From the sequence record LT960552.1: 64,000 bases of DNA, one strand, 5' to 3'. This document shows, piece after piece, positions 1 to 15,823 of the stretch; position 1 is the first letter of the stretch; each line of letters starts with the position of its first letter. Under the pieces are notes generated by a model. It was not told the origin of the DNA and did no database searches. It saw only the letters and a program-made list of their open reading frames with translations. The position numbers and the translations under genes were made by a program.

Positions 1-4
1 CTAT

Positions 5-77: not shown

Positions 78-286
78 TGTGTCTGGACGTTTAGACGGCT
101 AAACCGATTTTAGTCTCGATTTTCCATTAGTTCCCCTTCCGCGTCTAGAAAGTTCTAGGCAGAATCGAAAGTCGTCTTTTCGTGTTGACAGAGCTATATT
201 ATCAAATGGGGTTAATGATTGCAAGGACTTTTTTCAATAAAAATAAATTTGACATCTGATTATATAATGTAGTACTATAGTATCAA

Positions 287-330
287 TCCAGCGAAATGGA
301 CTAACCCTATAGGGTGCCGAGATCCGCCTA
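287..330 (+). ncRNA. two-hairpin element, copy A
   Basis: TCCA-GCGAAA-TGGA cta ACCC-TATA-GGGT; promoter TTGACA 249 / TACTAT 273. Confidence 0.65.
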
Positions 331-367
331 TTAATATATAAAAGCGAATGAGAATCATTACTAATTA

Positions 368-409
368 TAGTTATATTCCCGCACCCTCTAGGGTATCCGA
401 TTTCTCTCG
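368..409 (-). ncRNA. two-hairpin element, copy B (convergent with A)
   Basis: minus strand CGA-GAGAAA-TCG gat ACCC-TAGA-GGGT; minus promoter TTGTAT (442-447) -17- TATTAT (419-424). Confidence 0.55.
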
Positions 410-658
410 TCTGAAATAATAATATCAAAGTACCGAATAGAATACAAGGATTATTTTTGATTTTTATGAAAATAGTTCAAATCGATTTATACGTATAAAG
501 GAAAGGATTTAAAAGGCGTACAAAAAAGCGGGGTGAATGTATAGCAGTACTATAGAAACGCCGTGTAATGGTTCCTATGCATTGTGGTGATATGAATACG
601 CATATAAAGGAAAGAAACTTATATAAGGAAAGTATTTGCAATGAATGAAAGAAAGTAC

Positions 659-686
659 TTGCAAAGGTTTAAGGTTATGATACTAT
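659..686 (+). promoter_or_regulatory. sigma70 early promoter
   Basis: TTGCAA-16-TACTAT with A-rich upstream tract. Confidence 0.6.
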
Positions 687-706
687 CTATTTCGCCAACA
701 AGGAAA

Positions 707-719
707 CGCTCTTTAACAA
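707..719 (+). promoter_or_regulatory. boxA antitermination element (NusB/NusE site)
   Basis: CGCTCTTTAACAA matches the rrn/lambdoid boxA consensus, ~20 nt after a promoter. Confidence 0.7.
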
Positions 720-788
720 CTTACCGGATGATTACTTGATAGTGATTCTTTACTTTAGAAATAAAGAAAAAGAAAAACGATAAAGTAC

Positions 789-816
789 TTGACGGTGAGA
801 TTAGAAAGTGTAGAAT
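789..816 (+). promoter_or_regulatory. sigma70 early promoter
   Basis: TTGACG-16-TAGAAT. Confidence 0.65.
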
Positions 817-822
817 GTTGGT

Positions 823-960
823 TATCGAAAGGCGGTCAGGTTCGCCGTATGATAGGTAAGGGTAACAGGGCAGAATACAGTACTGTTACAGAGTAGCCAG
901 AAGTGCTACTACAGCCTTATAAAAAGCTAACTAACAGTTAGTGACCTATTTACCGCCTAA
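823..960 (+). ncRNA. candidate structured cloverleaf-like RNA
   Basis: nested helices 830-836/952-958 and 852-857/944-949; hairpins 839-846 (UUCG), 862-889, 892-910, 927-941; no ORF. Confidence 0.5.
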
Positions 961-1082
961 CGATATAACGAAAAAAGTTTCTAAGAAGTTGAAAAAAGTA
1001 CTTGACTGATAGAAGCAAAACATAGTACGATGTATCCAAGCCAAACGGCTAATATAACCTAAACTTTTAAGAGGAATTACAA

Positions 1083-1736
1083 ATGACTACTACTAACACT
1101 GCAAAAGTATCTCGTGTAACTTTGAACTCAATCATTTTCGCCACTGCTCCAGTACTGGCTGATGCTGTAGAAGGTGAAACTCACAGTAAAGAAGTACTGG
1201 CACAACACAAAACGGCCTTAGCTGAATTTGTATCAAATCAGGGTAAAGAGTTGGCTGGTTTTATTTTGGGTAAAGTTGAAACGCCTGATTTGATTATCGC
1301 GATTATCAAAGAAGCGGCGAAACAAATTCCAGCAGTACAAAAGCAACTGGCAGATGAAGCGGCAGTAATTGCACTTCAAGCAGAAGAACAGCGTGTTAAA
1401 GATGCTGAAGCGGCTGAATTGAAGCGGAAACAGGATGAAGCAGCATTGCAAGCTGAAAAAGACAAAATGCTTAAATTGTTAACTGACGGCGGTTTAGATT
1501 TGGCAATTGCTCAAACAATGGTAGCGGCTGGCCTTAAAGCAAAAGCTCCAGCTAATTCACCAAAAAACAGTTATGAGCGTGTCGCGGTAACCGTTGACGG
1601 TAAAGGCTACGATGTTCCAGTGCGGGGCAACATGAGCGAAGAATTGAAAGCACTGGTAGCTAAAGATGGCGGGGATCGTGATGCATTTATCGCAAAATAC
1701 CGCAACGAACCAGCCGCACAAGAAGTTACTGAATAA
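1083..1736 (+). CDS. early protein: coiled coil plus possible H-NS-like C-terminal DNA-binding domain
   Basis: strong RBS GAGGA; Ala/Glu/Lys heptad region; C-terminus resembles the H-NS DBD pattern. Confidence 0.85.
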   Translation: MTTTNTAKVSRVTLNSIIFATAPVLADAVEGETHSKEVLAQHKTALAEFVSNQGKELAGFILGKVETPDLIIAIIKEAAKQIPAVQKQLADEAAVIALQAEEQRVKDAEAAELKRKQDEAALQAEKDKMLKLLTDGGLDLAIAQTMVAAGLKAKAPANSPKNSYERVAVTVDGKGYDVPVRGNMSEELKALVAKDGGDRDAFIAKYRNEPAAQEVTE

Positions 1737-1756
1737 TATCTCAGTACTGTAATAAT

Positions 1757-1776
1757 AGGGGGCAAACTAGCCCCCT
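1757..1776 (+). terminator. hairpin terminator
   Basis: TAGGGGGC-aaacta-GCCCCCTA after the stop codon. Confidence 0.6.
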
Positions 1777-1884
1777 AAGCCGTTCTAATAGTATTTTAAT
1801 ACTAACGTGTTATAGTACTATTAGAAACGCTTAAAAGTCTTTATAGAGCGTTTTATCTTATATCTTAAGTAAGGATAAACGCTT

Positions 1885-2154
1885 ATGCAATTAACCCCAA
1901 TATCTAATTTAATTGATAAAAATACTCGCATCGCTAAAACGATGACAGCCATTAGCAGAACAACATCGGTTTTTAATGGTTATCTTGCTTTTGTTGTTAA
2001 TGGTGAATTAGTACAACGTAGGATCTATGACATGGCATATAATAGTTTATATGATTCGTGTATGTATATAGTTCACAAGAAAGTTAATTATGCCGTTAAT
2101 CTTCCCTGTAAGCCTATTAGCGGAGCGTTTAACGCTGAATCACTAAAGGCATAA
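1885..2154 (+). CDS. hypothetical protein
   Basis: ORF with AAGGA RBS, followed by a terminator. Confidence 0.7.
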   Translation: MQLTPISNLIDKNTRIAKTMTAISRTTSVFNGYLAFVVNGELVQRRIYDMAYNSLYDSCMYIVHKKVNYAVNLPCKPISGAFNAESLKA

Positions 2155-2213
2155 GGTAGCATAAAAAGCCCGTTAGAATAGCTCTGATGGGCTTTTTTAT
2201 TTGTTGAAAGTAC

Positions 2214-2241
2214 TTGTATTATAATCTCAGTACTGTATAAT
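2214..2241 (+). promoter_or_regulatory. early promoter, paired-AGTACT family
   Basis: agtacTTGTAT-16-TATAAT; near-identical copies at ~2738 and ~3176, and an inverted copy at 2665-2693. Confidence 0.8.
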
Positions 2242-2272
2242 TCTCTATATCGAAACAACGGGAGTAAATGAA

Positions 2273-2497
2273 ATGAGATTAAGTGAACTGTTAGCGAAGT
2301 TGGAAGCGGTTGCAGTACTGGCAAAAGAATACGGAAACGCTGATCCTGATATTTCTTTTTGGCATGATGAAGTTGAAACCATTGAACATTTAGAAGTTGC
2401 TTTCCCACAAGAATTGGATGATGCAATAATTCCTGTCCAAGTACAATCAAATCGTGAGCGGGGAAACTTTTCATTTCGATTAGTATTACCAGAATAA
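2273..2497 (+). CDS. hypothetical protein
   Basis: ORF, GGGAG RBS, own promoter. Confidence 0.8.
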   Translation: MRLSELLAKLEAVAVLAKEYGNADPDISFWHDEVETIEHLEVAFPQELDDAIIPVQVQSNRERGNFSFRLVLPE

Positions 2498-2506
2498 TCT
2501 TTATAA

Positions 2507-2542
2507 AAGGGGTTGACAATCGTTAACCCTTTATAGTACTAT
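2507..2542 (+). promoter_or_regulatory. fused terminator/promoter cassette
   Basis: hairpin AAGGGGTTGAC-aatc-GTTAACCCTTT contains -35 TTGACA; -10 TACTAT follows. Confidence 0.75.
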
Positions 2543-2550
2543 AATATCAA

Positions 2551-2594
2551 TCCAGAGAAATGGACTAACCCTATAGGGTGCCGAGATCCATCTA
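2551..2594 (+). ncRNA. two-hairpin element, copy C
   Basis: TCCA-GAGAAA-TGGA cta ACCC-TATA-GGGT. Confidence 0.65.
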
Positions 2595-2613
2595 TAGAAA
2601 ATTTAGTACTTAA

Positions 2614-2659
2614 TAGATATAGTTCCGCACCCTCTAGGGTATCCAATTTCTCTTGTATA
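2614..2659 (-). ncRNA. two-hairpin element, copy D (convergent with C)
   Basis: minus CAA-GAGAAA-TTG gat ACCC-TAGA-GGGT; minus promoter TTGTAA (2688-2693) -17- TACAAT (2665-2670). Confidence 0.6.
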
Positions 2660-2798
2660 TAAGTATTGTACAGTACTGAGATTATAATTACAAGGGGTAA
2701 ACAGAAATAAAAATAAAAATTAAAACGAAAAAAGAACTTGTATTATAATCTCAGTACTGTACAATTCTCTATATCGAAACCAGTTAAGGATTAAAGAA

Positions 2799-3185
2799 AT
2801 GGAACGTAACGAGCAATTTAGATTAGTTCTGGAAGTGTTACAAGGTATGGAATCATGTATTGATTCAAATAAAACTTATACATTTATAAATGGTAAATCA
2901 TTTAACTTAAATCAATCGGCTGGTATATGTTGGCATGTTTTAGTACACACACCGAATAGTGAATATTCTGGTATAGGTATGGAATACCTTTCCCCGTTGT
3001 TTAAAAGTATGGGATTGGATTTACATTATCCGGTAGAAATGCAAATAACGAATGATCGAGATGATGCTCGTTGGATTCATTCAATTTCTAAAAATCAATA
3101 TAACCCAATCGGGCAAGAGGGTAAATTGCGTATTAAGTTATTAAAAGATTTGATTAAGTACTACAAAAAAGAACTTGCATTATAA
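2799..3185 (+). CDS. hypothetical protein
   Basis: ORF, AAGGA RBS, own promoter. Confidence 0.8.
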   Translation: MERNEQFRLVLEVLQGMESCIDSNKTYTFINGKSFNLNQSAGICWHVLVHTPNSEYSGIGMEYLSPLFKSMGLDLHYPVEMQITNDRDDARWIHSISKNQYNPIGQEGKLRIKLLKDLIKYYKKELAL

Positions 3186-3230
3186 TCTCAGTACTGTATA
3201 ATTCTCTATATCGAAAACGGGAGAAATGAT

Positions 3231-3686
3231 ATGAATTCAAAACAGTTCCAAGATGCAACAAGAGAAACATTTTTAAAGTACTTTCCTCATGGTCACATAA
3301 GCATTTCTATGTTGGCAATAGGTGGTGGTTGTAATATCTTTTGTGGCTTGATTGGAGACATTAATGATGTAGGTGGTAAGATCCGCATGAATGATCCTGT
3401 AACGGTACGGGCTTATATTCATGATAACTTTTCATTTAATGATGAAAGTACTGAATTGGAAAACGTTGTTATTGAGTTTGATGGTTCGTGGATCTCAGTA
3501 CTACCAGACAATCCGCATCATTATTGTCAATCCCACAAGGTGCCAAGTCGCAAGATTAACGCAGAACCTAAAAAGGCATTAAGTAATTTGGATAAGTACT
3601 TTAAACGATTAAAGGACAGTGTAACAGAGCAAGCAGGATTAAATCGCATTATTCAGCAGGATAAGATCCCCGCGAAATATCTTTAA
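3231..3686 (+). CDS. hypothetical protein
   Basis: ORF, GGGAG RBS, own promoter. Confidence 0.8.
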   Translation: MNSKQFQDATRETFLKYFPHGHISISMLAIGGGCNIFCGLIGDINDVGGKIRMNDPVTVRAYIHDNFSFNDESTELENVVIEFDGSWISVLPDNPHHYCQSHKVPSRKINAEPKKALSNLDKYFKRLKDSVTEQAGLNRIIQQDKIPAKYL

Positions 3687-3744
3687 TTATAACTGTACAT
3701 ATTAACAGTACTTTCTATATTAACTTTTAAATGAGAATATAAAA

Positions 3745-4077
3745 ATGAAATTAAATTCCAAAAACATGATTGTAAAAGCATTTGAATTAAAAACATCAGA
3801 AGATGTTGCATTATTCAAAAAGTCATCTTTTGATATTGGTGATATACTTTACAAGTATGAAGATACTGTATTAGTATTTTATGTCGTAGATAATTTTATA
3901 TATTGTTTTGATGAATCAGAGCCAGAAACTGACATACTCAAAAGCAGTACTAACATGGGTGATATTTTGGTATCATACGGTATTGAGTTGGAATATTTCA
4001 AACAAGATTTTGGCGGTAAAGGTTTGTATCTTGCTGATTTTTGTATTAATGAAGATATATTAGTAGATTTACTATAA
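3745..4077 (+). CDS. hypothetical protein
   Basis: ORF in tandem array. Confidence 0.75.
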   Translation: MKLNSKNMIVKAFELKTSEDVALFKKSSFDIGDILYKYEDTVLVFYVVDNFIYCFDESEPETDILKSSTNMGDILVSYGIELEYFKQDFGGKGLYLADFCINEDILVDLL

Positions 4078-4152
4078 TATATTGTCAAAAGTACTTGCAT
4101 TGTATAAGCGAGTACTTTACAATAAGTTATCGTTAATTGAGAGGATTCGAAT

Positions 4153-4563
4153 ATGTTACATGTTAAAGGTTTTTCTGAGGGTGGTTATTGCTTTATGATT
4201 GGTGATAAGCCTGTTTCTGTTGTTGAAGCATTGCAGAAAAATGGTAAGAAATTTAACAAGAATACATTAAACGCTTTAAATAGAAATAATCTTGCTAATG
4301 AAAGCGATCTTGTGTCATTTGAGTTACAAGTACAATCATTACATAAAGGATTAACACCTGAATATGTAATTCAAATTTTACGCAATGAATATAATATTGA
4401 TTTTAATAATGATTTTCATGAGTTAAGTTCTGCCAGCGTACTGGATTTATTAACAGTATATCATATTGCACAATATCGAGCACCCTCACCATGTAATCGT
4501 GATGGTTCGCCAATGCGTTATTTTTACCAGTACTTAAAACGCTTCATAGAAAAGAAAAAATAA
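4153..4563 (+). CDS. hypothetical protein
   Basis: ORF, GAGGA RBS, own promoter TTGCAT-17-TACAAT. Confidence 0.8.
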   Translation: MLHVKGFSEGGYCFMIGDKPVSVVEALQKNGKKFNKNTLNALNRNNLANESDLVSFELQVQSLHKGLTPEYVIQILRNEYNIDFNNDFHELSSASVLDLLTVYHIAQYRAPSPCNRDGSPMRYFYQYLKRFIEKKK

Positions 4564-4569
4564 TCAAAT

Positions 4570-4605
4570 AAGGGGTTGACTTCGGTTAACCCTTTTTGCT
4601 ATACT
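4570..4605 (+). promoter_or_regulatory. fused terminator/promoter cassette
   Basis: AGGGGTTGAC-TTCG-GTTAACCC-TTTTT then TGc-TATACT. Confidence 0.8.
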
Positions 4606-4613
4606 AATATTAC

Positions 4614-4657
4614 TCCAGAGAAATGGACTAACCTTATAAGGTGTATAAGTGTACCTA
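4614..4657 (+). ncRNA. two-hairpin element, copy E
   Basis: TCCA-GAGAAA-TGGA cta ACCT-TATA-AGGT (compensatory change in hairpin 2). Confidence 0.65.
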
Positions 4658-4751
4658 TAATAAAATAATTAAAATTCATACAAAAAAGTACTTGTATTTT
4701 CTTTTCAGTACTGTATAATTCTTTATATCGAACACAAACGAGGGTTTTTAA

Positions 4752-5174
4752 ATGAGAACATGTAAAGAGTGTGGGAACAATTGCAACGTATTATCTAATG
4801 GTGTTGTCCATCATTACGATGAGGATGATAAAATTGATTATGATCTAGATGGGGATCATGTTGCAATACCTGAATTATCTGATTCTGAAAACAACATGTT
4901 AAATCCAATTCTTCAAAGTACTTTTAATTTTAATGGTGATGTTCCTTGTATTAACTACGCCGCGAATGGTGGAGGTTATGAAACTTACCAGTACTTCATT
5001 TGTGCTGATGGTGGATGTTTAGGAATTGGAACAGTAATTAATGAGTTTCATAAAGTAAACTTTAATGATCCTGATGATAAACAATGGCACATTGTAGGGG
5101 TTGACGTGAATTATGAAAATACTAATCTGATAGATGATCACACAGGGGATTATATACCAGTAGCATATAGTTAA
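4752..5174 (+). CDS. hypothetical protein (N-terminal CxxC)
   Basis: ORF, GAGGG RBS. Confidence 0.8.
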   Translation: MRTCKECGNNCNVLSNGVVHHYDEDDKIDYDLDGDHVAIPELSDSENNMLNPILQSTFNFNGDVPCINYAANGGGYETYQYFICADGGCLGIGTVINEFHKVNFNDPDDKQWHIVGVDVNYENTNLIDDHTGDYIPVAYS

Positions 5175-5212
5175 CACTACAACGGGGATCATTGATCCCC
5201 TTTTGAGGTTAT

Positions 5213-5473
5213 ATGAATTTGTTTTATAGTACTAGAAAATTAGTAGTTTCATTTGATTGTAATTCTGATAAAATACATTGTGTAATATACAGAAAAGGAA
5301 TTCCCCGTTCTGATAACTGGAAAGTACTACAATCCTATACAATCAAACGTAAAGGGTTTAAACAGTTAGATGACCGTACACAAAAGGCATGTTTACGGCA
5401 AGTACTTAAAGCCATGCGTAACCGTATAACGCAAGCCTTACATGTTGCATTAACTACAAAAGATATTTTATAA
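5213..5473 (+). CDS. hypothetical protein
   Basis: ORF, GAGG RBS. Confidence 0.75.
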   Translation: MNLFYSTRKLVVSFDCNSDKIHCVIYRKGIPRSDNWKVLQSYTIKRKGFKQLDDRTQKACLRQVLKAMRNRITQALHVALTTKDIL

Positions 5474-5525
5474 TATAATGAAAAAGTACTGGACAATGCT
5501 CCGGTACTTTGTTATAGTACTTACA

Positions 5526-5570
5526 TCGAAGAGAAATTCGAATAGCCCATAGGGTTCAGGGGTATATCTA
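5526..5570 (+). ncRNA. two-hairpin element, copy F (diverged)
   Basis: TCGAA-GAGAAA-TTCGA at AGCCC-ATA-GGGTT; promoter TGGACA 5490 -17- TATAGT 5513 inside a terminator hairpin. Confidence 0.55.
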
Positions 5571-5659
5571 TTAAAAATAATTAAAATTAAAATGAAAAAG
5601 AACTTGCATTATATTATGGTTATGGTAATATATGTATATCGAAACGGGAGGTTAAAGAA

Positions 5660-5728
5660 ATGAAACTACGTTATCAATGGCTGTTGTTTGCTTTGTTTAT
5701 CCTTATTACCTGCGTAAACTTTGATTAG
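5660..5728 (+). CDS. 22-aa hydrophobic peptide MKLRYQWLLFALFILITCVNFD
   Basis: first ATG after a promoter, GGGAGG RBS; below the ORF-track cutoff. Confidence 0.6.
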   Translation: MKLRYQWLLFALFILITCVNFD

Positions 5729-5738
5729 GGGTTATATT

Positions 5739-6080
5739 ATGATGATTGTAAACTTTGGTGATGATATCAATTTCAATAGTATTAAGCATATTATTGAAAA
5801 TAGTCAATCTGTATCTATTACTTTATGTTCTGGCGATGGTGATGATTTTACGGTGATAGAGCGTGAAAGAAGTAAATTTGCTGGTTTTCATGAGGCTGAT
5901 CTTATTGTTATTAGTACTGTACGGAATGCTAATGGTGATGGTATCTATGTATATCCTGAATACTTCACTATTGAACAGGCAGACACTGCTATTGAAGCCT
6001 TAAAAATAAGGGCGAGTGATACTAACATTAAATCATCTGAATTATCGGATTCATTAACTGATTTATTAGAATCGGAATAA
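5739..6080 (+). CDS. hypothetical protein
   Basis: ORF; start refined to ATG after AGGGG. Confidence 0.75.
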   Translation: MMIVNFGDDINFNSIKHIIENSQSVSITLCSGDGDDFTVIERERSKFAGFHEADLIVISTVRNANGDGIYVYPEYFTIEQADTAIEALKIRASDTNIKSSELSDSLTDLLESE

Positions 6081-6146
6081 CATATTAAAAGTACTTGCAT
6101 TATATTAGCGAGTACTTTATAATGAAGTTATCAAGTGAGGTACACA

Positions 6147-6194
6147 ATGAAATGGTTAATTATAGCAGTACTGATTTACATTATCTTTTTTTAA
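6147..6194 (+). CDS. 15-aa hydrophobic peptide MKWLIIAVLIYIIFF
   Basis: first ATG after a promoter, GAGGT RBS. Confidence 0.55.
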   Translation: MKWLIIAVLIYIIFF

Positions 6195-6213
6195 TCAAGA
6201 GGAAGTATTAAAA

Positions 6214-6423
6214 ATGGCACATAAAGATCGTCGTTACAATGTTAACCCTGAATTTACCGGACACGAATCAGGCAAGAAACAATTTGTTATTCGTTTTTGT
6301 GGTGATTTTGTTTCTTCTCATTCAAAGCGTGATGACGCAGAAAAAGAGATTGCCCGCTGGAAAAGTACTGGAACCGTTCCACATATCGGAAAGCAATGGG
6401 ATAATCTAGTTGAACCTGTTTAA
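6214..6423 (+). CDS. hypothetical protein
   Basis: ORF, GAGGA RBS. Confidence 0.75.
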   Translation: MAHKDRRYNVNPEFTGHESGKKQFVIRFCGDFVSSHSKRDDAEKEIARWKSTGTVPHIGKQWDNLVEPV

Positions 6424-6488
6424 TTAATCAATATTAATAGTACTGGTGAAATATCCAGTACTGTTTTTTTATACAGCATAATATATAA

Positions 6489-6533
6489 TAGATACATTTT
6501 CGCACCCTGTGGGTCAAAGACATTTCGCTGTCT
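6489..6533 (-). ncRNA. two-hairpin element, copy G
   Basis: minus AGACA-GCGAAA-TGTCT ttg ACCC-ACA-GGGT; minus promoter TTGACA (6565-6570) -17- TATTAT (6542-6547). Confidence 0.6.
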
Positions 6534-6658
6534 ATGAAGTAATAATACAGTATTTTGATATACGTGTCAAGGATTAAATTAAAATTAAAACAAAAGAAAG
6601 TACTTGCATTAAGTATGAAGTACTGTATAATCTTTTATATCGAAACGGGAGAATTAAA

Positions 6659-6925
6659 ATGAGTAACGCATTGAAAGCCATGATATCGTTGGTAATTTCA
6701 GTACTGATAACCTTTATAATATTAACTGCGGCGAGAGATGATGTTCTGTGGCGGTTAACCATGTTAGGATATGAAATTGAAGATACATGGTATTCTTTTT
6801 TGACATATGGCCTTAATGGGATATATGCTATATTAATGGTAGGTTGTTTTTATATTTTGTTTTGTTTAATGTTTTATATTACAGGGGGCAGTAATGAGAG
6901 TACAACCAATCCAGCCAATCATTAA
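6659..6925 (+). CDS. small membrane protein
   Basis: two hydrophobic segments; GGGAG RBS. Confidence 0.75.
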   Translation: MSNALKAMISLVISVLITFIILTAARDDVLWRLTMLGYEIEDTWYSFLTYGLNGIYAILMVGCFYILFCLMFYITGGSNESTTNPANH

Positions 6926-7064
6926 GTTAGCGAATAGTACTGTCAAGAATGAATATTCAAAAATTGTTGTTGACATTCCTTGTAGTACTGTGGTATCATT
7001 AGGTTCTTACAAATCGTGTGATTTGTATAATTCAATTTATAAACAATAAAAGGTAAATTTAAAT

Positions 7065-7922
7065 ATGGGTAAGTTCATTAGTTATGGTATTCTCGCGATT
7101 ATTGTATTCGTTGGCTTGGGTGCATTGTTTGGTTCGTGGTACACGGTTGATCAGCAAGATCGTGGGGTAGTACTAACGAATGGTAAAATTACCAGTATTG
7201 CAGAACCTGGTTTGAACTGGAAAATGCCATTTATGGATTCTGTTGTACAAATTCCAGTCACTGGACAAAATAAAAGTTATTCGAATCTAAAAGCATATAG
7301 CCGAGATCAACAACCGGCAGATATGACTATTTCTGTATCATTCTCAGTCCCAGCGGCTAAGGTAGGGGAATTATATAGTACTTTTGGTGATATTGACAAT
7401 CTAACTACTCGTGTTATTGATCGTCAAGTACCACAAGCTGTGGAAAATGTTTTTGGTCAGTTTAATGCGATTTTAGCAGTACAAGATCGTAATAAGTTAG
7501 TTACTAACTTAAACATTGCAATTAAAAAGGCAATGGAAAACTACCCAGTAGTAATTGAGAGTGTACAGGTTGAAAACCTATCATTCAGTCCAGCATATGA
7601 AAAATCAATTGAAGAACGTATGCAAGCAGAGATCGCAGTTACAAAGCGTAAACAGGACTATGAACAGGCTAAAATTTCAGCATCTATCACAGTCGCAAAT
7701 GCACAGGCCGAAGCTGATAGCCAGTTAGCTAAAGCAACGGCAGGAGCACAAGCAACACGCTTACAGGGTGAAGCTGACGCCGCCGCAATTAAGGCGAAGT
7801 CCGAAGCACTAAACAATAATCCACAACTTGTACAGTTGGCGGCGGTGGATAAATGGGATGGTGTACTACCTACTCAAATGGTTCCATCTGCTACAGTGCC
7901 GTTTGTGAATCTAAACAAATAA
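7065..7922 (+). CDS. SPFH/band 7/prohibitin-domain membrane protein
   Basis: N-terminal TM, 'TVDQQDRGVVLTNGK', 'EPGLNWKMPF', AQA/EAE coiled tail. Confidence 0.9.
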   Translation: MGKFISYGILAIIVFVGLGALFGSWYTVDQQDRGVVLTNGKITSIAEPGLNWKMPFMDSVVQIPVTGQNKSYSNLKAYSRDQQPADMTISVSFSVPAAKVGELYSTFGDIDNLTTRVIDRQVPQAVENVFGQFNAILAVQDRNKLVTNLNIAIKKAMENYPVVIESVQVENLSFSPAYEKSIEERMQAEIAVTKRKQDYEQAKISASITVANAQAEADSQLAKATAGAQATRLQGEADAAAIKAKSEALNNNPQLVQLAAVDKWDGVLPTQMVPSATVPFVNLNK

Positions 7923-8056
7923 GTACTATCACAAAAAGCCTCGCATTGTCGAGGCTTTTTATTATCTGAATAATTAAAATTAAAACGTAAAAAGTACTTG
8001 CATTGCATGAGCGAGTACTTTATAATACTTATATCAACCACACAAGAGGCAACAAA

Positions 8057-8398
8057 ATGAAAACTGAATTCTTCGCGACAAGAACATTGGCACGTAACGC
8101 CGTAGAAGCTCTTAATGGTAAGTTCAAAGATTTTGGTAAAGATGCTCCTACTGGCGAACGTTGGGCGGTGCTGGTGGATGAAGTACTAACAGTGCAAGAA
8201 CCAGAAGTTAAAAGTACTAACGAATTGCATTTTGATTTCGTTAATACATTAGCTGATGATGCAGCTAAAGCATTAAATCAGCCTACTGGTATTCGTGGAG
8301 AGCAAACATTAACAACTCCTAACAAGAAGCCTGTACGTGTCTTGTGGCGGCGTTCAATGGTAGCAGTACGTTTGTCTGCACTTCTCTCTAAAGTGTAA
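8057..8398 (+). CDS. hypothetical phage protein
   Basis: start refined to ATG after GAGG. Confidence 0.8.
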   Translation: MKTEFFATRTLARNAVEALNGKFKDFGKDAPTGERWAVLVDEVLTVQEPEVKSTNELHFDFVNTLADDAAKALNQPTGIRGEQTLTTPNKKPVRVLWRRSMVAVRLSALLSKV

Positions 8399-8447
8399 TA
8401 CAACTACTTGGGGGCATGATATGCCCCTAATTATTAAGTGAGATCAT

Positions 8448-8690
8448 ATGAAGAAATATGTAATTGATAATACACAATTACGCATACATTTCAAGGCACA
8501 AACAAAAGTACTTGATAAGGCTATTCGTATTGTGAAAGATTATAATAATGGAAGTGTTAGAGCTAGACGGTTAGGGTGTGGTTTATTTTCAGTAATAGAT
8601 GTATCACATAACGAACGGATCGTTATTAAAAATAAAACACTTAATTTAATGACTCATGAACAATATAATAAATTCGTCGAACGACGTTGA
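8448..8690 (+). CDS. ParE/RelE-like toxin-fold protein (orphan)
   Basis: pattern KA..v..y..G.v.aRRL..G..S.i.V...ER....LMTHEQYNK recalls prophage 'ParE family toxin-like' proteins. Confidence 0.55.
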   Translation: MKKYVIDNTQLRIHFKAQTKVLDKAIRIVKDYNNGSVRARRLGCGLFSVIDVSHNERIVIKNKTLNLMTHEQYNKFVERR

Positions 8691-8746
8691 CATAATCCCC
8701 TAAATATGTATAATAATAATTATACACGATTAGGGGATTTTTTATT

Positions 8747-9484: not shown

Positions 9485-9550
9485 AATAAAGGGTTGACTT
9501 ATGTTAACCCTTTTGCTATTGTATCAGTACTGAAACATAAGGAATATATT

Positions 9551-9901
9551 ATGAAAAAGTTATTATTACTCGCTGCATTGTTTAGTACTACAGTTTCAGC
9601 TCAAACATTTACATGTGATAACTTTACTCTGTATCAAGGTATCGGAAATAATCAATACAGACAAGTAGATGATGCAGGTGTACAATCATCTTTGATTATT
9701 ACTATTGAAAGTACTGAACCATTGATTACCGTTTCTGTACAAGGTGATAAAGAAGTAGTGCAATTCTGGAAAGATTATAATGTATACAGAAATGTAACTG
9801 GTGAAATTTCACAAGATGGTAATAATTTTATAATGAAAACAGCTATACAAGATAGTACTGGATTTTATATACCTGTTAAAATTGAGTACCATTGTAAATG
9901 A
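9551..9901 (+). CDS. secreted/periplasmic protein
   Basis: signal peptide MKKLLLLAALFSTTVSA; start refined. Confidence 0.8.
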   Translation: MKKLLLLAALFSTTVSAQTFTCDNFTLYQGIGNNQYRQVDDAGVQSSLIITIESTEPLITVSVQGDKEVVQFWKDYNVYRNVTGEISQDGNNFIMKTAIQDSTGFYIPVKIEYHCK

Positions 9902-10095
9902 AATTATCATTTCAATTTATGCAAAAACGTGTACAGTACTTAAGTACTAAACTTAAAGCATCATTTGAATTACAATATACTATTAACCAGAATTATCATT
10001 TAATGAAGAATGGAAGATTCATTGTTATGGATCAACCGCTTGAAGTACTGGAAATAGTAGTAAGTGCATTATTAAGTAATAACATTAAAAAATAA
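9898..10095 (+). CDS. hypothetical protein
   Basis: start overlaps the upstream stop. Confidence 0.65.
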   Translation: MKLSFQFMQKRVQYLSTKLKASFELQYTINQNYHLMKNGRFIVMDQPLEVLEIVVSALLSNNIKK

Positions 10096-10102
10096 TTAAA
10101 TC

Positions 10103-10137
10103 AAGGGTTGACATATGTTAACCCTTTTTGCTATACT
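10103..10137 (+). promoter_or_regulatory. fused terminator/promoter cassette
   Basis: AAGGGTTGAC-atat-GTTAACCC-TTTTT, TTGACA-18-TATACT. Confidence 0.8.
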
Positions 10138-10145
10138 ACTATCAA

Positions 10146-10189
10146 TCCAGCGAAATGGACTAACCCTATAGGGTGTATAGTTATGTCAG
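10146..10189 (+). ncRNA. two-hairpin element, copy H
   Basis: TCCA-GCGAAA-TGGA cta ACCC-TATA-GGGT. Confidence 0.65.
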
Positions 10190-10342
10190 TACTTTTATTA
10201 TATGCATAGAAAAAGAATTTAAAAATAAAATGAAAAAGTACTTGTGTTAGATGCTGGTTGTGTTATTATAACTACATCGAGAGGCGGCAATCTCTTGATA
10301 AACAAAAATCAAAAAACATTTTAAGAGAGAGAGAGAAAAATC

Positions 10343-10672
10343 ATGGCTAACTTCAACAAAGATAACTCTGTATTACGCACTGCTGCTCACACACTGAAAG
10401 TAGGTACAATTGTAGTACATAATTATACTACATTCTGTCATGGTGTTATCGTAAGTTATGCAAAAAATGGTGATTACAACGTTTACTTTCCTGAAGATAT
10501 GGCTCCTGCAATGCCTAAGTATCAGGCTAATACAGAAGAAGCTCGTGCGAATCGTACTCGCACACTAACTTCACGTACTGGTTTCTTTGTAAGCAAACAC
10601 AAATCTTTCCCTGCAATTCGAGAATTGCAACGCCAGTACCGCCTCAAAGGTACTGCACTGGAAGCATTATAA
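10343..10672 (+). CDS. hypothetical protein
   Basis: ORF, own promoter. Confidence 0.8.
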   Translation: MANFNKDNSVLRTAAHTLKVGTIVVHNYTTFCHGVIVSYAKNGDYNVYFPEDMAPAMPKYQANTEEARANRTRTLTSRTGFFVSKHKSFPAIRELQRQYRLKGTALEAL

Positions 10673-10744
10673 TAATTCATAAATGGGGTGACAAAGCTCA
10701 CCCCGTTTGATATACTATCAGTACTTAATCAGGAGTACAATATC

Positions 10745-10966
10745 ATGCTTAAAGATTTAATTGAAGAACTTAACAGAGTACCTACTGAATCAGAACAACA
10801 AGCAGGTTTAAAACTTCATGATCTATGTATTCAAAATGATCTTGAAATTCCAGAAGTACTAATGACATTAAATTATTTTCGTGGTATCGAACCAGAATTG
10901 ATTGTATCAAAGATTAATGCTGTCAGTACTCCATTAATCGAAAATGCTATGTATGTAATGCATTAA
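10745..10966 (+). CDS. hypothetical protein
   Basis: start refined after AGGAG. Confidence 0.75.
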   Translation: MLKDLIEELNRVPTESEQQAGLKLHDLCIQNDLEIPEVLMTLNYFRGIEPELIVSKINAVSTPLIENAMYVMH

Positions 10967-10976
10967 TTTAAAATAA

Positions 10977-11009
10977 AGGCTTGACACGTTCAAGCCTTTT
11001 TGTTATAGT
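10977..11009 (+). promoter_or_regulatory. fused terminator/promoter cassette
   Basis: AGGCTTGA-cacgt-TCAAGCCT-TTTT, TTGACA-17-TATAGT. Confidence 0.8.
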
Positions 11010-11017
11010 ACTATCAA

Positions 11018-11061
11018 TGAGGAATAACTCACTAACCCTATAGGGTGTATAAGTGTATCTA
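11018..11061 (+). ncRNA. two-hairpin element, copy I
   Basis: TGAG-GAATAA-CTCA cta ACCC-TATA-GGGT (hairpin-1 stem recoded but still paired). Confidence 0.65.
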
Positions 11062-11144
11062 TAATAAAATAATTAAAATTCAAATGAAAAAAGTACTTGC
11101 AATATAATTTTAGTACTGTATAATGTTTTACATAGAAAGAAAAT

Positions 11145-11378
11145 ATGGAAAAAATTATGTTTACAAAATTAACTGATAAAATCAATCGTGAGTTACTTCG
11201 AAATGGTACACGTATATCGCGTGAAACATCTGATGCTACTATCACTATTGGTTATACTACTGGTGGATATTCAGTATTTGAATTCGATAAAAAGGGGGAA
11301 CTTATTGATCATCATTATTCCTTTCATTTGAATTATGCTTACAATATGTTTAAGCGTCAATGTAAAAAGTACTTGTAA
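11145..11378 (+). CDS. hypothetical protein
   Basis: ORF, own promoter. Confidence 0.7.
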   Translation: MEKIMFTKLTDKINRELLRNGTRISRETSDATITIGYTTGGYSVFEFDKKGELIDHHYSFHLNYAYNMFKRQCKKYL

Positions 11379-11450
11379 TAAGTTATCAGTACTGTATACT
11401 TAGTATATGAATTAGGGAATGTTCCTTAATCGATGGTGGAGGTTTTAATT

Positions 11451-11831
11451 ATGAAATATGGCGTAAGAATTAACAATCACAAAGATATCACTTGGTGTAG
11501 TTGTAAAGCAAAAGCTGAAAGTATCTTCAATGGTTATTATGATGCAGTACTGTTTATTGGTACTGACAGCGATCACTTGGCATATCGGTTTAAAGCTAAT
11601 AACTATGAAATCGATGAATACATTTATGCACAAGAAAATGGATGCAGTGACGGTAACTTTATAGCAGTAGTTGAAGACAAACAAGGTAATGTGTTATATC
11701 ATTCTACTATTGAGGGGCGTGGAAAGTGTAGTGATATTCTTGTAGCAATTTCCGAGGCACTTACTGCGTCAAAAGTAGAGCATTCTTATATGTGTATAGA
11801 TGAAACATTACAATTAGAGACTTGGGGATAA
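11451..11831 (+). CDS. hypothetical protein
   Basis: start refined after GGAGG. Confidence 0.75.
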   Translation: MKYGVRINNHKDITWCSCKAKAESIFNGYYDAVLFIGTDSDHLAYRFKANNYEIDEYIYAQENGCSDGNFIAVVEDKQGNVLYHSTIEGRGKCSDILVAISEALTASKVEHSYMCIDETLQLETWG

Positions 11832-11918
11832 AAGTACTTGCAATAAGTATTCAGTACTGTATAATGTATTACATAGGGTAAGCAATACCGCTTACCCATA
11901 TTAAGTGAGAATATTAAA

Positions 11919-12494
11919 ATGAAATTCAATGAACTGAACGCTGAACAACAAGCCGCTGCTATTGAGATACATCGTGATATTAATGTAGATCATCAAGACT
12001 GGCACGAGTATGTTAAATGTACACATCATTCTAACCTTGAAGCGGTAGGATTCGATGGTGTAGAGTCTGCTTATTCTGGTTTTTGGTCACAAGGTGATGG
12101 GGCAAGTTTTACCGCAAGTTCACTTGATATTGAAAAGTTTTTACGTTCACAAAAACGCTGGACTTACTATCGCGTATTACATGAAATGATTCGTATCAAT
12201 GAGTTGTGGGTAAAAGTTGTTAGAACTACTCATCGTTATTGTCATGAAAACACTACACAAGCCGAATTACACGGCGAGCATTACTTAAATTTAACTCCAC
12301 GTCAAGAAAAATTTTATGAAGAACTGGAAAAGGAAATAGATGCATATATCACTAATGCAGGACAAGAGTACTACAGTGCTCTTAATACTTCATATAATAA
12401 TATGACATCTGATGAAGAAGTAAAAGAAAGTATAATAGCTAATGAAATGGAATTCGAAGAAGATCCACGCGAGAGCTGTGTAACTTACCTTTAA
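11919..12494 (+). CDS. conserved mobile-element protein (YSGFWSQGDGASF motif)
   Basis: motif recalled from plasmid/ICE proteins often labelled 'antitoxin of TA stability system'; function unproven. Confidence 0.6.
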   Translation: MKFNELNAEQQAAAIEIHRDINVDHQDWHEYVKCTHHSNLEAVGFDGVESAYSGFWSQGDGASFTASSLDIEKFLRSQKRWTYYRVLHEMIRINELWVKVVRTTHRYCHENTTQAELHGEHYLNLTPRQEKFYEELEKEIDAYITNAGQEYYSALNTSYNNMTSDEEVKESIIANEMEFEEDPRESCVTYL

Positions 12495-12577
12495 AATATA
12501 TTAAAAGTACTATTGCATTACAGGTGATAGTACTTTATAATTAATTTTATCCAGTACATTATTAAGGAAACTGTATC

Positions 12578-12919
12578 ATGAGAAAACCAAACGTAGAACT
12601 AATGTGTGATTCACATCATGGCGTATATATTCCGCAAATTATGATCCCACGCTTGATCGCAAACGGCTGGCGTAACATTCCACAAGATGCATATAATATT
12701 GCAATTGCTGGACCATATAATGAACAAGATAATGATCAGTACTGGAGTATATGGGATGAAGTACTTGACAATGCAGAATGGCATGATGATCATACTTCTC
12801 AAATCTTTAAGTTATATCAAGACGGTGATGTATTTGCGTACTGTAAAGAATCAATGACTCCTACGGAATACTTTAACATGTTTGGGGAATTCCCTGAATG
12901 GTATAGTGAAGAAATTTAA
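12578..12919 (+). CDS. hypothetical phage protein
   Basis: ORF, AAGGA RBS, own promoter. Confidence 0.8.
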   Translation: MRKPNVELMCDSHHGVYIPQIMIPRLIANGWRNIPQDAYNIAIAGPYNEQDNDQYWSIWDEVLDNAEWHDDHTSQIFKLYQDGDVFAYCKESMTPTEYFNMFGEFPEWYSEEI

Positions 12920-13012
12920 ATTCAAAAAGTACTTGCAATAAGTATTCAGTACTGTATAATATTTTACATAGACACTAGATAACCTCGTGTTAAAGTAAAA
13001 GGAATAACGATC

Positions 13013-13360
13013 ATGACTGACATTGAAACTACTTTAAATGACTTAAATTCACAACTTGATAGACTCGTTATTAATTCAGATAAACACATAACTACTGTTG
13101 GTTATGTCTATGTTAGACCTTTTAACTTAGGCTTGCTGGTGGAACAACTACCAGAAGGTGTAAAAGTTGGTCCAGCAATGGGTGATACATTACCGACTAT
13201 ATTCTCTGAATACATGGCTAATGCTAATCTTTATCTAGTACAAAGTATTGCTAAAGAACCAGAAATCAAATATGTTTCTATTCAGCAGTACTTAACCGAT
13301 TCAATTGAAAGTACTGAAAACATTATCAAAATGATTAAATCATTGCAATCAGTAAATTAA
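13013..13360 (+). CDS. hypothetical protein
   Basis: ORF, own promoter. Confidence 0.8.
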   Translation: MTDIETTLNDLNSQLDRLVINSDKHITTVGYVYVRPFNLGLLVEQLPEGVKVGPAMGDTLPTIFSEYMANANLYLVQSIAKEPEIKYVSIQQYLTDSIESTENIIKMIKSLQSVN

Positions 13361-13367
13361 TTGAAAG

Positions 13368-13403
13368 AAGGGGTTGACTTCGGTTAACCCTTTTTGCTAT
13401 ACT
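13368..13403 (+). promoter_or_regulatory. fused terminator/promoter cassette
   Basis: same sequence as the 4570 cassette. Confidence 0.8.
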
Positions 13404-13411
13404 AATATTAC

Positions 13412-13455
13412 TCCAGAGAAATGGACTAACCCTATAGGGTGCAGAAATGTATCTA
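13412..13455 (+). ncRNA. two-hairpin element, copy J
   Basis: TCCA-GAGAAA-TGGA cta ACCC-TATA-GGGT. Confidence 0.65.
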
Positions 13456-13574
13456 TATGATATAGTACTGTGTATTTGTACAGGAAAATAAATTAAAAAT
13501 TTAAATGAAAAAGAGCTTGCATTATATGCTGTAGCTGATAGAATGTAGTTATTGAAACAACGGGAGTAAATGAA

Positions 13575-13814
13575 ATGGCTAATAAAGAAGTAGAATTTAA
13601 AGTTAGAAAATGGTCAGAAACCAATGCTAAGCCGTTCGATGTAGTGCTGGTGGATCATTTAAAAAACAACCAACATTACCAACCACACGTAGAATTCAGT
13701 ACTATTGAAAATGCTGAAAAACACATGGAAACGTTGAGTACTTTAATTACAACCAATCCAGAACGCATTAACTTTATTCGTGACCATTGGCCGGTAGATG
13801 CGGGTATAGAATAA
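13575..13814 (+). CDS. hypothetical protein
   Basis: leader AAACAACGGGAGTAAATGAAATG identical to that of the 2273 gene. Confidence 0.8.
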   Translation: MANKEVEFKVRKWSETNAKPFDVVLVDHLKNNQHYQPHVEFSTIENAEKHMETLSTLITTNPERINFIRDHWPVDAGIE

Positions 13815-13897
13815 AAATTCAAACGAAAAAAGTACTTGACTATATCAGTTGAGTACTTTAAAATAGAATCTTAATCAACGCAATAGGAAACGAAATC

Positions 13898-14791
13898 ATG
13901 AAAATGTACAAAGGTATCGCAGGTAAAGCAATCAAAGAAAACCGCCCACTGCTAAGATCAGAACTGGAATTGGTTGTTCCCTCAATCTTTTCAAGTACTG
14001 GTCACGAATCACGTTCAGCCCGTTTTGCACCTGTTGCAACCATCGACGTTGTAGACCGTTTAGCAAAAGAAGGTTATCAACCATTCTTTGCTATTCAGTC
14101 CAATGTACGTGACGAATCTAAACGCGAATTCACTAAGCATATGCTGCGTTTCCGTCAACATGATGGCAAAACATCCGGCGAATCTAATGAGATCATTCTC
14201 GTTAACGCAAATGATGGAACAAGTGCATACCAATTAATGGCCGGTCAATTCCGTTTCGTTTGTGCTAATGGTCTGGTTATGGGTAACATGCAACATAACA
14301 CAAAAATCTATCACAAAGGTAACAATATCATGGATGACGTGATCGAAGGCGTCTATTCAGTAGTGAAAGATTTTGATAACATCGAACGTTATAAAGATGA
14401 AATGCAACTAATTCAATTGAATGATAACGAGCGTAAAACATTTGCTACCGCTGGTTATCTCATGAAAGAAGGATTACCAGAAAGCGGCTCACTCGATGAC
14501 TTTCTATATAATCCTTTACAATTGTTATCACGTTCAGGTCTAAACAGTCAAGATCAATATGATAACAGTTTGTATAGTACTTTTAATACTGTACAACAAC
14601 ACTTAATCAACGGTGGTCAACGCTCATTCATGGAAGATCGTAATGGTCGTACTCGCCGCCGTTCAAGTCGTGGCGTTACTAATATCAATAAGAATATTGA
14701 TATCAATAGTAACTTGTGGCAACTGGCAACGGCTCTTGTTGAGAAAAATACTAAAGTAGTACATGATATTGTTGATGCACAATTATCATAA
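13898..14791 (+). CDS. DUF932-family protein (plasmid leading-region type)
   Basis: 'VPSIFS..HESRS', 'EGYQPFFA.Q..VRD..KREFTKHMLR', 'EIILVN..DGTSAYQ..AG.FRFVC.NGLV'. Confidence 0.9.
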   Translation: MKMYKGIAGKAIKENRPLLRSELELVVPSIFSSTGHESRSARFAPVATIDVVDRLAKEGYQPFFAIQSNVRDESKREFTKHMLRFRQHDGKTSGESNEIILVNANDGTSAYQLMAGQFRFVCANGLVMGNMQHNTKIYHKGNNIMDDVIEGVYSVVKDFDNIERYKDEMQLIQLNDNERKTFATAGYLMKEGLPESGSLDDFLYNPLQLLSRSGLNSQDQYDNSLYSTFNTVQQHLINGGQRSFMEDRNGRTRRRSSRGVTNINKNIDINSNLWQLATALVEKNTKVVHDIVDAQLS

Positions 14792-14879
14792 CAAATAAGT
14801 ACTAAAATCATATAAGGGGTTGACTTAGGTTAACCCCTTTTGCTATACTTCTTTTATCGAAACAAACGAGGGTTAGCAA

Positions 14880-15215
14880 ATGTTAGAAGTATACATAAGT
14901 TCAGATTTAGTTTCAAATGGTAGAAATGAATTCGGTACTGAACAAGAAAAAACAGAGTACTACATCATTGCAGAATCTACAAATGGTCAACGTATTAGAT
15001 TAGATAGTGTGTCAGTTGTTAATAGAGAATACACTGATACACAATGTACTGAGTACTTAGAACGTATCGTTACTAAAATTAAAAATCATTTAGATGCTGG
15101 TGGTAAGTTAAATAAAAATTGTTGGTACGAAATAGATCCTTGCTATGGTTCACAACGTTATATCGATTTGGATAGTACTGGTTACTTTTATCAACGTGAG
15201 AAACTCGAAGATTAA
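14880..15215 (+). CDS. hypothetical protein
   Basis: ORF after terminator/promoter cassette 14815-14849. Confidence 0.8.
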   Translation: MLEVYISSDLVSNGRNEFGTEQEKTEYYIIAESTNGQRIRLDSVSVVNREYTDTQCTEYLERIVTKIKNHLDAGGKLNKNCWYEIDPCYGSQRYIDLDSTGYFYQREKLED

Positions 15216-15286
15216 TAATAATGGGGTTGACTATAGTTAGCCCCTTTTGTTATAATTCTTATACACCATCACGAAAGGAAAGAAAC

Positions 15287-15484
15287 ATGACCAGAGAAGA
15301 AAGAATTGAAGCCGCTCATAAAGTACTGTCATACAAACATCTTGAAATGATGGAAGCTATGGAAAGAGTACTAGGCACGTTTGGCGAAGAAAATAAAGAT
15401 AAATTCGCCGCCGTATATGATGAAGTTGAAAACATTCTTTATCCGCATGGTGCGGGTGAAGATGCAGTATACTGCGAAAATTAA
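15287..15484 (+). CDS. hypothetical protein
   Basis: start refined; cassette at 15222-15256. Confidence 0.75.
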   Translation: MTREERIEAAHKVLSYKHLEMMEAMERVLGTFGEENKDKFAAVYDEVENILYPHGAGEDAVYCEN

Positions 15485-15545
15485 TAATTGACAAACTCTG
15501 TCAGTACTGATATACTGGCAGAATATTAAATCAGAGGATACAATC

Positions 15546-15728
15546 ATGGTTCAAGTAGATATGACTGAATTGCGGAAACGTTGGTATGATCTGGCACGTT
15601 CAGGTACTGCTATCACTGGTGATAATAGAACGCTTTTCAATACACTTGATGGCTGGCAACGTCAAGAATTAAAAAATGCATATCTTAAAGGTATGACAGA
15701 TGAAGTGCAAGCATGGGATGAAGCATAA
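15546..15728 (+). CDS. hypothetical protein
   Basis: ORF, GAGGA RBS. Confidence 0.75.
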   Translation: MVQVDMTELRKRWYDLARSGTAITGDNRTLFNTLDGWQRQELKNAYLKGMTDEVQAWDEA

Positions 15729-15737
15729 TTAAAAATA

Positions 15738-15771
15738 AAGGCTTGACTTAGGTTAAGCCTTTTGCTATAGT
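15738..15771 (+). promoter_or_regulatory. fused terminator/promoter cassette
   Basis: AGGCTTGAC-ttag-GTTAAGCCT-TTT, TTGACT-17-TATAGT. Confidence 0.8.
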
Positions 15772-15779
15772 ACTATCAA

Positions 15780-15823
15780 TGCAGCGAAATGCACTAACCC
15801 TATAGGGTGCGGAGCTATGTCTG
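15780..15823 (+). ncRNA. two-hairpin element, copy K
   Basis: TGCA-GCGAAA-TGCA cta ACCC-TATA-GGGT (compensatory C-G to G-C). Confidence 0.65.

Follow-up and report, generated by a model that had tools for sequence, protein, structure and literature searches.

What is the two-hairpin unit that recurs through the first 16 kb of a jumbo phage genome, and in what form does it act? The window analyzed here, 64,000 nucleotides in length, is the start of record LT960552.1, the 352,596-bp genome of Yersinia jumbo phage fHe-Yen9-03 (genus Eneladusvirus), with 100% identity of its first 6 kb to positions 1–6000 of that record. This Rak2-like jumbo myovirus is related to fHe-Yen9-04, Serratia phage BF and the Erwinia pEa_SNUABM phages and, more distantly, to GAP32, CBB and XbC2. 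A first-pass annotation had proposed a multicopy structured element in this region; it was right on that point, but missed the terminal repeat in which the copies lie, the spread of the element through the whole clade, the already known type of many of its promoters and the use of copies as recombination points. As judged from sequence patterns, the 52-base element is a genuine RNA module, structured and under selection, which begins at the predicted transcription start (+1) and matches no described RNA family. Our preferred reading, to which we assign a probability of about 0.4, is that it forms a self-contained immediate-early RNA module acting by binding a protein.

Exactly 11 copies of the unit lie between positions 284 and 15828, each where the first-pass annotation had placed it. 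A loose pattern comprising the loop, the spacer and hairpin 2 gave 10 matches, against 0.09 expected from shuffles, and a scan for hairpin 2 agreed. A covariance model built from the 7 most regular copies recovered the remaining 4 at E values of 1e-5 to 1e-7 and found no other match in the 64 kb with filters off. A broader model of 86 copies from eight phages returned the same 11, with the next-best match in the window at 14.9 bits. The copies are 0.1–4 kb apart rather than in tandem. Most sense copies are preceded by a promoter of an already known kind, that of the promoter-early stem-loop (PeSL) cassettes of T4-type phages (Arbiol 2010, Comeau 2014; PMC2839356, PMC4122927). The copies are as follows.

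Copy A, 249–335, plus strand: −35 at 249–254, −10 at 273–278; element 284–335, with hairpin 1 at 287–300 and hairpin 2 at 304–315; convergent with B.
Copy B, 363–447, minus strand: element 363–413, hairpin 2 from 394; −10 at 419–424, −35 at 442–447; directed leftward, convergent with A.
Copy C, 2513–2599, plus strand: PeSL-type promoter with the −35 inside the stem-loop; element 2548–2599, hairpin 2 from 2568; convergent with D.
Copy D, 2609–2693, minus strand: element 2609–2659, hairpin 2 from 2640; promoter of the second (gene-type) class at 2665–2693; antisense to genes.
Copy E, 4576–4662, plus strand: promoter and element 4611–4662, hairpin 2 (ACCT/AGGT) from 4631; followed by a second promoter and then g008.
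Copy F, 5490–5575, plus strand: promoter and element 5524–5575; stem 1 CGAA/TTCG; hairpin 2 from 5545, closed by G-U and with a 3-nt loop.
Copy G, 6484–6570, minus strand: element 6484–6536, hairpin 2 from 6514; promoter 6542–6570; antisense, between g011 and g012.
Copy H, 10108–10194, plus strand: PeSL-type promoter and element 10143–10194, hairpin 2 from 10163; left edge of a 3.1-kb segment absent from fHe-Yen9-04.
Copy I, 10981–11066, plus strand: PeSL-type promoter and element 11015–11066, hairpin 2 from 11035; stem 1 TGAG/CTCA, loop GAATAA.
Copy J, 13374–13460, plus strand: PeSL-type promoter and element 13409–13460, hairpin 2 from 13429; right edge of the 3.1-kb indel.
Copy K, 15743–15828, plus strand: PeSL-type promoter and element 15777–15828, hairpin 2 from 15797; stem 1 TGCA/TGCA; last copy before the inferred end of the repeat.

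That every copy has a sigma70-like promoter of its own had been claimed before. An independent promoter scan placed sigma70-type sites directly upstream of 9 of the 11 (A, C, E, F, G, H, I, J and K), and the −35 hexamers of B and D are weaker (TTGTAT and TTGTAA). Copies C, E, H, I, J and K carry the −35 inside a G-run/C-run stem-loop followed by a T-run, which is the PeSL arrangement; the promoters of A, B, D, F and G lack this stem-loop. Whichever class drives them, more than 150 copies are conserved from the predicted +1 onward. In every phage the element invariably starts with C/T-A 5–6 bases past the −10 hexamer, the expected start site. Hairpin 1 begins 2–3 nt from the predicted 5′ end in most copies, in line with the earlier placement of this hairpin at the head of a transcript. 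After 25–50 nt, each unpaired sense copy gives way to A+T-rich DNA and a further, complete promoter that contains GTACTTG, and only then to a gene; the element promoters are thus separate from those of the neighboring genes, as had been proposed.

Two further PeSL-type composites, at 14815–14849 and 15223–15256 (~14820 and ~15227), hold no element; a terminator stem-loop overlaps the −35 and the promoters are placed to drive g029 and g030 directly. Across the whole window the hexamer AGTACT is present 268 times, whereas base composition predicts ~21. It flanks the −35 and −10 hexamers of promoters of the second class and recurs in hairpins that follow many copies of the element, which suggests that a phage factor or a phage sigma reads it.

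Pairing in the two hairpins was evaluated across phages. Among 80 distinct copies, 98% of cells were paired (15–52% in slid controls), and the covariation score was 0.45 versus 0.14 in shuffles, with 0 of 500 reaching the observed value. A second, largely different set of 70 distinct copies gave 95.7% paired and a score of 0.39 versus 0.12. Hairpin 1 has a 4–5 bp stem and a six-base purine-rich loop, most often GCGAAA (39/80 distinct copies) or GAGAAA (18/80). Its stem is paired in 93–96%, compared with 15–59% in slid controls; all four pairs show two-sided changes, and ~20 fully complementary stem versions occur. These four pairs also give the top four mutual-information values of the alignment (1.14–1.25 bits, with the next pair at 0.60), so the covariation first noticed in stem 1 is both real and strong.

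The parallel claim for stem 2 was overstated. Hairpin 2 is nearly invariant, with three C-G pairs fixed in 95–100% of copies, a closing pair that is A-U or G-U, and a loop of 3–4 nt. Within the window the ACCT/AGGT stem of copy E is indeed a two-sided change, but it is the only one, and GCCC/GGGT is a one-sided step from A-U to G-U. The ~15 nt 3′ of hairpin 2 are constrained in sequence. A G directly follows the hairpin in 97–98% of copies, the position ten bases on is a pyrimidine in 99%, and the next base is a purine in 99–100%, with G in only 37–40%. RNAalifold independently predicted both hairpins. No third helix or pseudoknot was detected, as outside hairpin 1 no column pair stood out in mutual information. 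Visual inspection suggested a 3-bp hairpin in the tail of some copies, but it proved inconsistent across copies. A mini-ORF (ATG-GAC-TAA) in hairpin 1 was rejected, as it exists only where the stem is TCCA/TGGA. Overall, a stem of free sequence with a kept loop, together with a sequence-fixed hairpin 2 and tail, suggests recognition by a protein.

Does the element work as RNA or as DNA? G-U pairs outnumber A-C pairs 17 to 1, and the hairpin 2 loops (ACA, ATA and TATA) always lie on one strand. Both observations indicate that the sense, transcribed strand acts single-stranded, most simply as RNA. A role at the DNA level, as an operator for a repressor of early promoters, a site forming a hairpin or cruciform, or a replication origin primed by a transcript (R-loop), would suit the perfect 12-bp palindrome formed by hairpin 2 in Eneladusvirus, the A+T-rich stretch that comes after the element and the long imperfect inverted repeats formed by convergent pairs. 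In most lineages, however, the loop is ACA or ATA, which is non-palindromic and always on the same strand. A protein binding the duplex would not select for pairing of stem 1 while leaving its sequence free, nor would tolerance of G-U but not of A-C be expected, and the fixed join to +1 points to a transcript. We therefore regard action as DNA as barely credible. The first-pass annotation had likewise ranked a single-stranded DNA role low, a judgment that the exact +1 anchoring and the strand-asymmetric G-U pairs favor. A promoter for a single-subunit phage polymerase, suggested by the letters TATAGGG, was also dropped, since the loops of other lineages read ACA or ATA and every copy has its own sigma70 promoter.

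The covariance-model search of related jumbo phages that had been recommended as a check located the family in every Rak2-like lineage tested, at ~8–14 copies per genome and confined to the ~20-kb direct terminal repeat. BF holds 12 copies, all in the first 19 kb of the 50 kb searched, and pEa_SNUABM_50, GAP32 and XbC2 also carry the family. All copies fall within the annotated terminal repeats of CBB (22,456 bp), Klebsiella phage fENko-Kae01 (19,736 bp) and E. coli phage fEgEco12 (20,993 bp; PMC13070987). Rak2, 121Q and six uncultured contigs of 355–371 kb hold copies as well, and the complete Asteriusvirus TH47 genome (352 kb) has its ten matches together in one 16-kb block adjoining the marker of the repeat's left end. 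Placed by synteny only, the repeat of fHe-Yen9-03 is inferred to end at ~17.0–17.2 kb, between g034 and an array of paralogous ~200-aa genes, and all 11 copies are inside it. Occurrence in both orientations and confinement to the early region, both noted before, thus hold, with that region now recognizable as the direct terminal repeat. From 17194 on, at the inferred repeat end, the genes form a tightly packed array of similar size (~190–215 aa), and an equivalent array adjoins the annotated repeat ends of CBB and fENko-Kae01.

Beyond this clade the element was essentially absent from what we searched. Small unrelated viral contigs gave single pattern matches that all fail the covariance model. 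Among 185,579 bacterial and archaeal species genomes there were only chance matches, 24 scattered single ones in unrelated metagenome-assembled genomes, of which one, marginal at 25 bits, passes it. No match to the element was found by blastn in 5,426 E. coli genomes. Applied to the terminal repeat of PA5oct, a more remote jumbo phage whose repeat has RNA-seq-supported non-coding RNAs, the model detected no copy. The proposal of an undescribed RNA family also stood up to database and literature searches. Rfam 15 gave 0 matches in the 64 kb at gathering scores and none at any copy at E≤1 over 1–17.5 kb, and the searchable literature, including the CBB and fEgEco12 papers, holds no description of the element. 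A search of the window for tRNA and tmRNA genes returned none.

Arrangement of the copies is itself conserved. Copies A/B and C/D form convergent pairs, with the predicted starts of A and B ~128 nt apart, and an A/B-like pair lies ~1 kb from the left end of the repeat in every genus. Antisense copies keep their position across genera; that of copy G is also occupied in BF, pEa_SNUABM_50 and GAP32. These lone antisense copies, and others in fENko-Kae01 and fEgEco12, are followed 25–70 nt later by the terminator hairpin of the converging gene, which for copy G is that of g011 (6439–6462).

Comparison with fHe-Yen9-04 revealed recombination between copies. The segment 10258–13353 (3.1 kb; g020–g026 plus copy I) is absent from that phage, with the junction falling within ~170 nt common to copies H and J, and other indels between the two phages break inside promoter cassettes. 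Cassette-sized segments at 2260–2529, 2780–3164 and 3691–4071 are likewise replaced or absent in this 98–99% identical sister, and where breakpoints were checked they lie in promoter cassettes or element copies. Such exchange raises the question of whether the element is anything more than a PeSL-like mobile regulatory cassette, its repeats persisting as homology for the shuffling of gene cassettes and its hairpins incidental. The precedent in T4-type phages and the indels just described speak for this explanation. Repeats kept for homology should homogenize, however, and instead there are the ~20 complementary versions of stem 1, each retained at its own position across species. The core is also conserved between genera whose flanks no longer align, and G-U pairs exceed A-C pairs. 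Shuffling as the sole function is thus very improbable: recombination between copies is a demonstrated side-effect that is insufficient as an explanation.

From the copies, their sequence-level promoters, the covariation, the strand asymmetry, the restriction to the repeat, the spread through the clade and the recombination between copies, all of them observed, we infer transcription, protein binding and an effect. In the protein-binding reading, the strong promoter of each copy would be fired by host sigma70 RNA polymerase in the first minutes of infection, giving a transcript that begins exactly with the conserved 52 nt. With 11 copies per repeat, and 22 per packaged genome, the cell would be flooded with a 5′-terminal RNA tag. 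This tag would bind a conserved partner. That partner might come from the phage, as a conserved early protein, or from the universal machinery of the host, for instance RNA polymerase or the apparatus of RNA decay. Lone antisense copies would stop at the nearby terminator hairpin and yield RNAs of ~100–125 nt. Sense copies, which have no terminator, would read into the next promoter and gene, so that the same tag would head some early mRNAs. That the element is an independent unit is indicated by its own promoter, its occurrence in either orientation, the separate promoter of the neighboring gene and the terminator near some copies. The non-coding RNAs of the PA5oct terminal repeat offer a precedent (PMC7318152).

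Several points weigh against this protein-binding module. Thermodynamically, the hairpins are only weakly stable: z-scores against shuffles range from −0.2 to −2.4. In some lineages hairpin 1 is absent in about a fifth of copies; in some Asteriusvirus and fENko-Kae01-group copies an A-rich linker keeping GAAA stands in its place, with hairpin 2 and the tail retained. Convergent pairs would yield mutually complementary RNAs, a poor fit to a decoy, and the 3′ ends of sense-copy transcripts are undefined, so that these may be mere mRNA leaders. The searchable literature contains no transcriptome for any phage of the Rak2-like clade. Finally, no binding partner was found among the terminal-repeat proteins. 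A Pfam scan of 30 of the 34 yielded only Band_7, a ParE-like domain and DUF932, with no antiterminator, NusG-like or RNA-binding domain, and a basic-patch scan of all 34 ORFs revealed no arginine-rich N-terminus of the N type. The closest arginine-rich candidate, g022 (4 Arg in residues 4–23), lies in the segment absent from fHe-Yen9-04.

The position of the element directly after early promoters, amid 17 terminator-like sites where 7.2 would be expected, raises the possibility of a cis-acting leader that controls elongation in the manner of nut, put, Q or LoaP. Hairpin 2 and the tail would then cause a promoter-proximal pause, stabilized by the hairpin, at ~+41. Either hairpin 1 would load a factor onto the polymerase halted there or the RNA would modify the polymerase directly, and transcription would read through the terminators of the repeat. 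Published hallmarks of hairpin pauses are −10G, −1Y and +1G (PMC10268239); the tail columns fit them, with the 3′ end of hairpin 2 at −11. Across phages whose hosts range from Xanthomonas to E. coli the core does not vary, which would suit a universal partner such as RNA polymerase. The match to a pause was made post hoc, however, and only a minority of copies have the +1 G. Under such control, long antisense RNAs would arise from the antisense and convergent copies, and the lone antisense copies precede the very terminators they should read through. Known antitermination sites need no exact anchoring at +1, the strong promoter just downstream would leave adjacent genes independent of element transcripts, and the protein scans above returned no antiterminator, NusG-like or N-like arginine-rich candidate. 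Elongation control is in our view unlikely; if it does operate, it would bear on the question of how T4-like phages pass from immediate-early to delayed-early transcription.

Proximity of hairpin 1 to the triphosphate end, 2–3 nt in most copies, could instead mark a protective stem-loop that shields early transcripts from 5′-end-dependent decay; the stem of hairpin 1, free in sequence but kept in pairing, would agree with this. Protection does not need conserved loops, a conserved hairpin 2 or a conserved tail, however, and stems of only 4 bp are no stabler than shuffles. Copies without hairpin 1 leave 13–17 unpaired nt at the 5′ end, and antisense copies have no message to protect. Shielding as the function of the element is accordingly quite improbable.

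A bolder form of the protein-binding reading would make the element a clade-wide host-takeover RNA: a 52-nt module, expressed from 10–14 strong promoters per repeat within the first minutes after infection, that binds protein and titrates or reprograms a universal host machine such as RNA polymerase, RNA decay or an RNA-sensing defense. We hold this form to be somewhat doubtful. If true, the early effectors of phages would gain a new class, composed of RNA instead of protein; host takeover by large phages is usually explained by small early proteins. The Rak2-like clade holds the largest Enterobacterales phages, several of them candidates for therapy or biocontrol, and nearly all of its terminal-repeat genes lack an assigned function. 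As the best-conserved non-coding feature of the terminal repeat, the element offers a testable entry into immediate-early events.

Other features lie apart from the element. At the opposite end of the record (348000–352596), a leftward array of four RCC1-repeat genes ends at 351572, separated from the window start by ~1 kb of non-coding DNA; were the map circular or concatemeric, copy B would face these genes from ~1.4 kb away. Exact copies of the 9-mer AGATGGATA start at 5, 37 and 69, spaced by 32 nt, and a pattern search found one further occurrence in the 64 kb. The region of relatives aligned to window positions 1–80 is rich in similar short repeats, and Tandem Repeats Finder reported no repeats at the left end of the window. 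The spaced 9-mer may act at the left end of the terminal repeat as a signal for the terminus, for packaging or for an origin. On the minus strand at ~55–215, a non-coding block is almost invariant across Eneladusvirus and Mimasvirus, and part of it is kept even in Asteriusvirus. A leftward promoter-like site of its own and predicted hairpins, among them one with a compensating change, lie in this block, which could be a second conserved non-coding RNA or a DNA signal.

Within the repeat, g016 (8448–8690) encodes a ParE-like toxin domain (E 9e-12) and is preceded by g015 (8057–8398), which encodes a small basic protein without assigned function; the two may form a toxin–antitoxin-like pair or an antitoxin-defeating decoy. 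The only sub-threshold Rfam matches (rimP leader and Leu leader), on both strands at 7904–8004, coincide with the palindromic terminator after g014, and this site is almost certainly just a bidirectional terminator.

Known systems share single features with the element. In N4-type promoters a template-strand DNA hairpin serves a virion polymerase; here a sigma70-type promoter lies upstream of every copy and the G-U asymmetry favors the transcribed strand. The lambda nut site (boxA and boxB, with N) is similar in its small promoter-proximal hairpin with a variable stem and kept purine-rich loop, upstream of terminators. It differs in having 2 sites rather than 11, and the anchoring at +1 and the antisense copies are peculiar to the element. 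The boxB loop is GNRA-like and has five bases, compared with the six-base purine-rich loop and 4–5 bp stem of hairpin 1, which is known from sequence only. With HK022 put the element shares two adjacent hairpins in nascent RNA near early promoters, and a factor-independent action on polymerase is conceivable. The put stems are much longer than the 4 bp seen here, and put has two sites per genome, both sense. The nut/boxB- or put-like membership that had been suggested is unsupported, with no such family matched in Rfam and no antiterminator or N-like protein among the repeat proteins scanned. In his-type pauses the likeness is again at the sequence level, hairpin 2 ending 11 nt before a conserved pyrimidine, with G at −10 and a purine at +1. 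The differences are a stem of only 4 bp, a +1 G in the minority and the lack of a leader peptide or attenuator.

Decoy RNAs, such as CRISPR-repeat-mimic RNA anti-CRISPRs and pseudo-ToxI, are also short structured phage RNAs with their own promoters. They act by titrating a host protein. Such a decoy role, which the first-pass annotation had proposed, is only conceivable for the element. Its copies are dispersed rather than tandem, and even at E≤1 none of them matches an Rfam family, whether of CRISPR repeats, of ToxI or of any other kind. The related jumbo phage PA5oct produces two abundant non-coding RNAs from its terminal repeat, amounting to 2–5% of phage reads (PMC7318152). It likewise has a long direct terminal repeat full of early genes and relies on the host polymerase, but its RNAs are single-copy and 236–451 nt in length. 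PeSL cassettes are similar in being repeated and intergenic in a variable early region, where recombination from copy to copy makes indels. In build, too, they agree: upstream DNA rich in A+T precedes a sigma70 consensus promoter, and a G-run/C-run stem-loop lies over the −35 and terminates transcription arriving from upstream. Each PeSL closes with a Shine–Dalgarno sequence and a gene start, whereas here the promoter leads to the 52-nt element and then to a second promoter, a partner copy or a terminator. The PeSL description includes neither transcribed hairpins nor covariation, nor the restriction to a terminal repeat seen here. The element extends the PeSL idea, in that such cassettes can carry an RNA payload yet remain points of shuffling.

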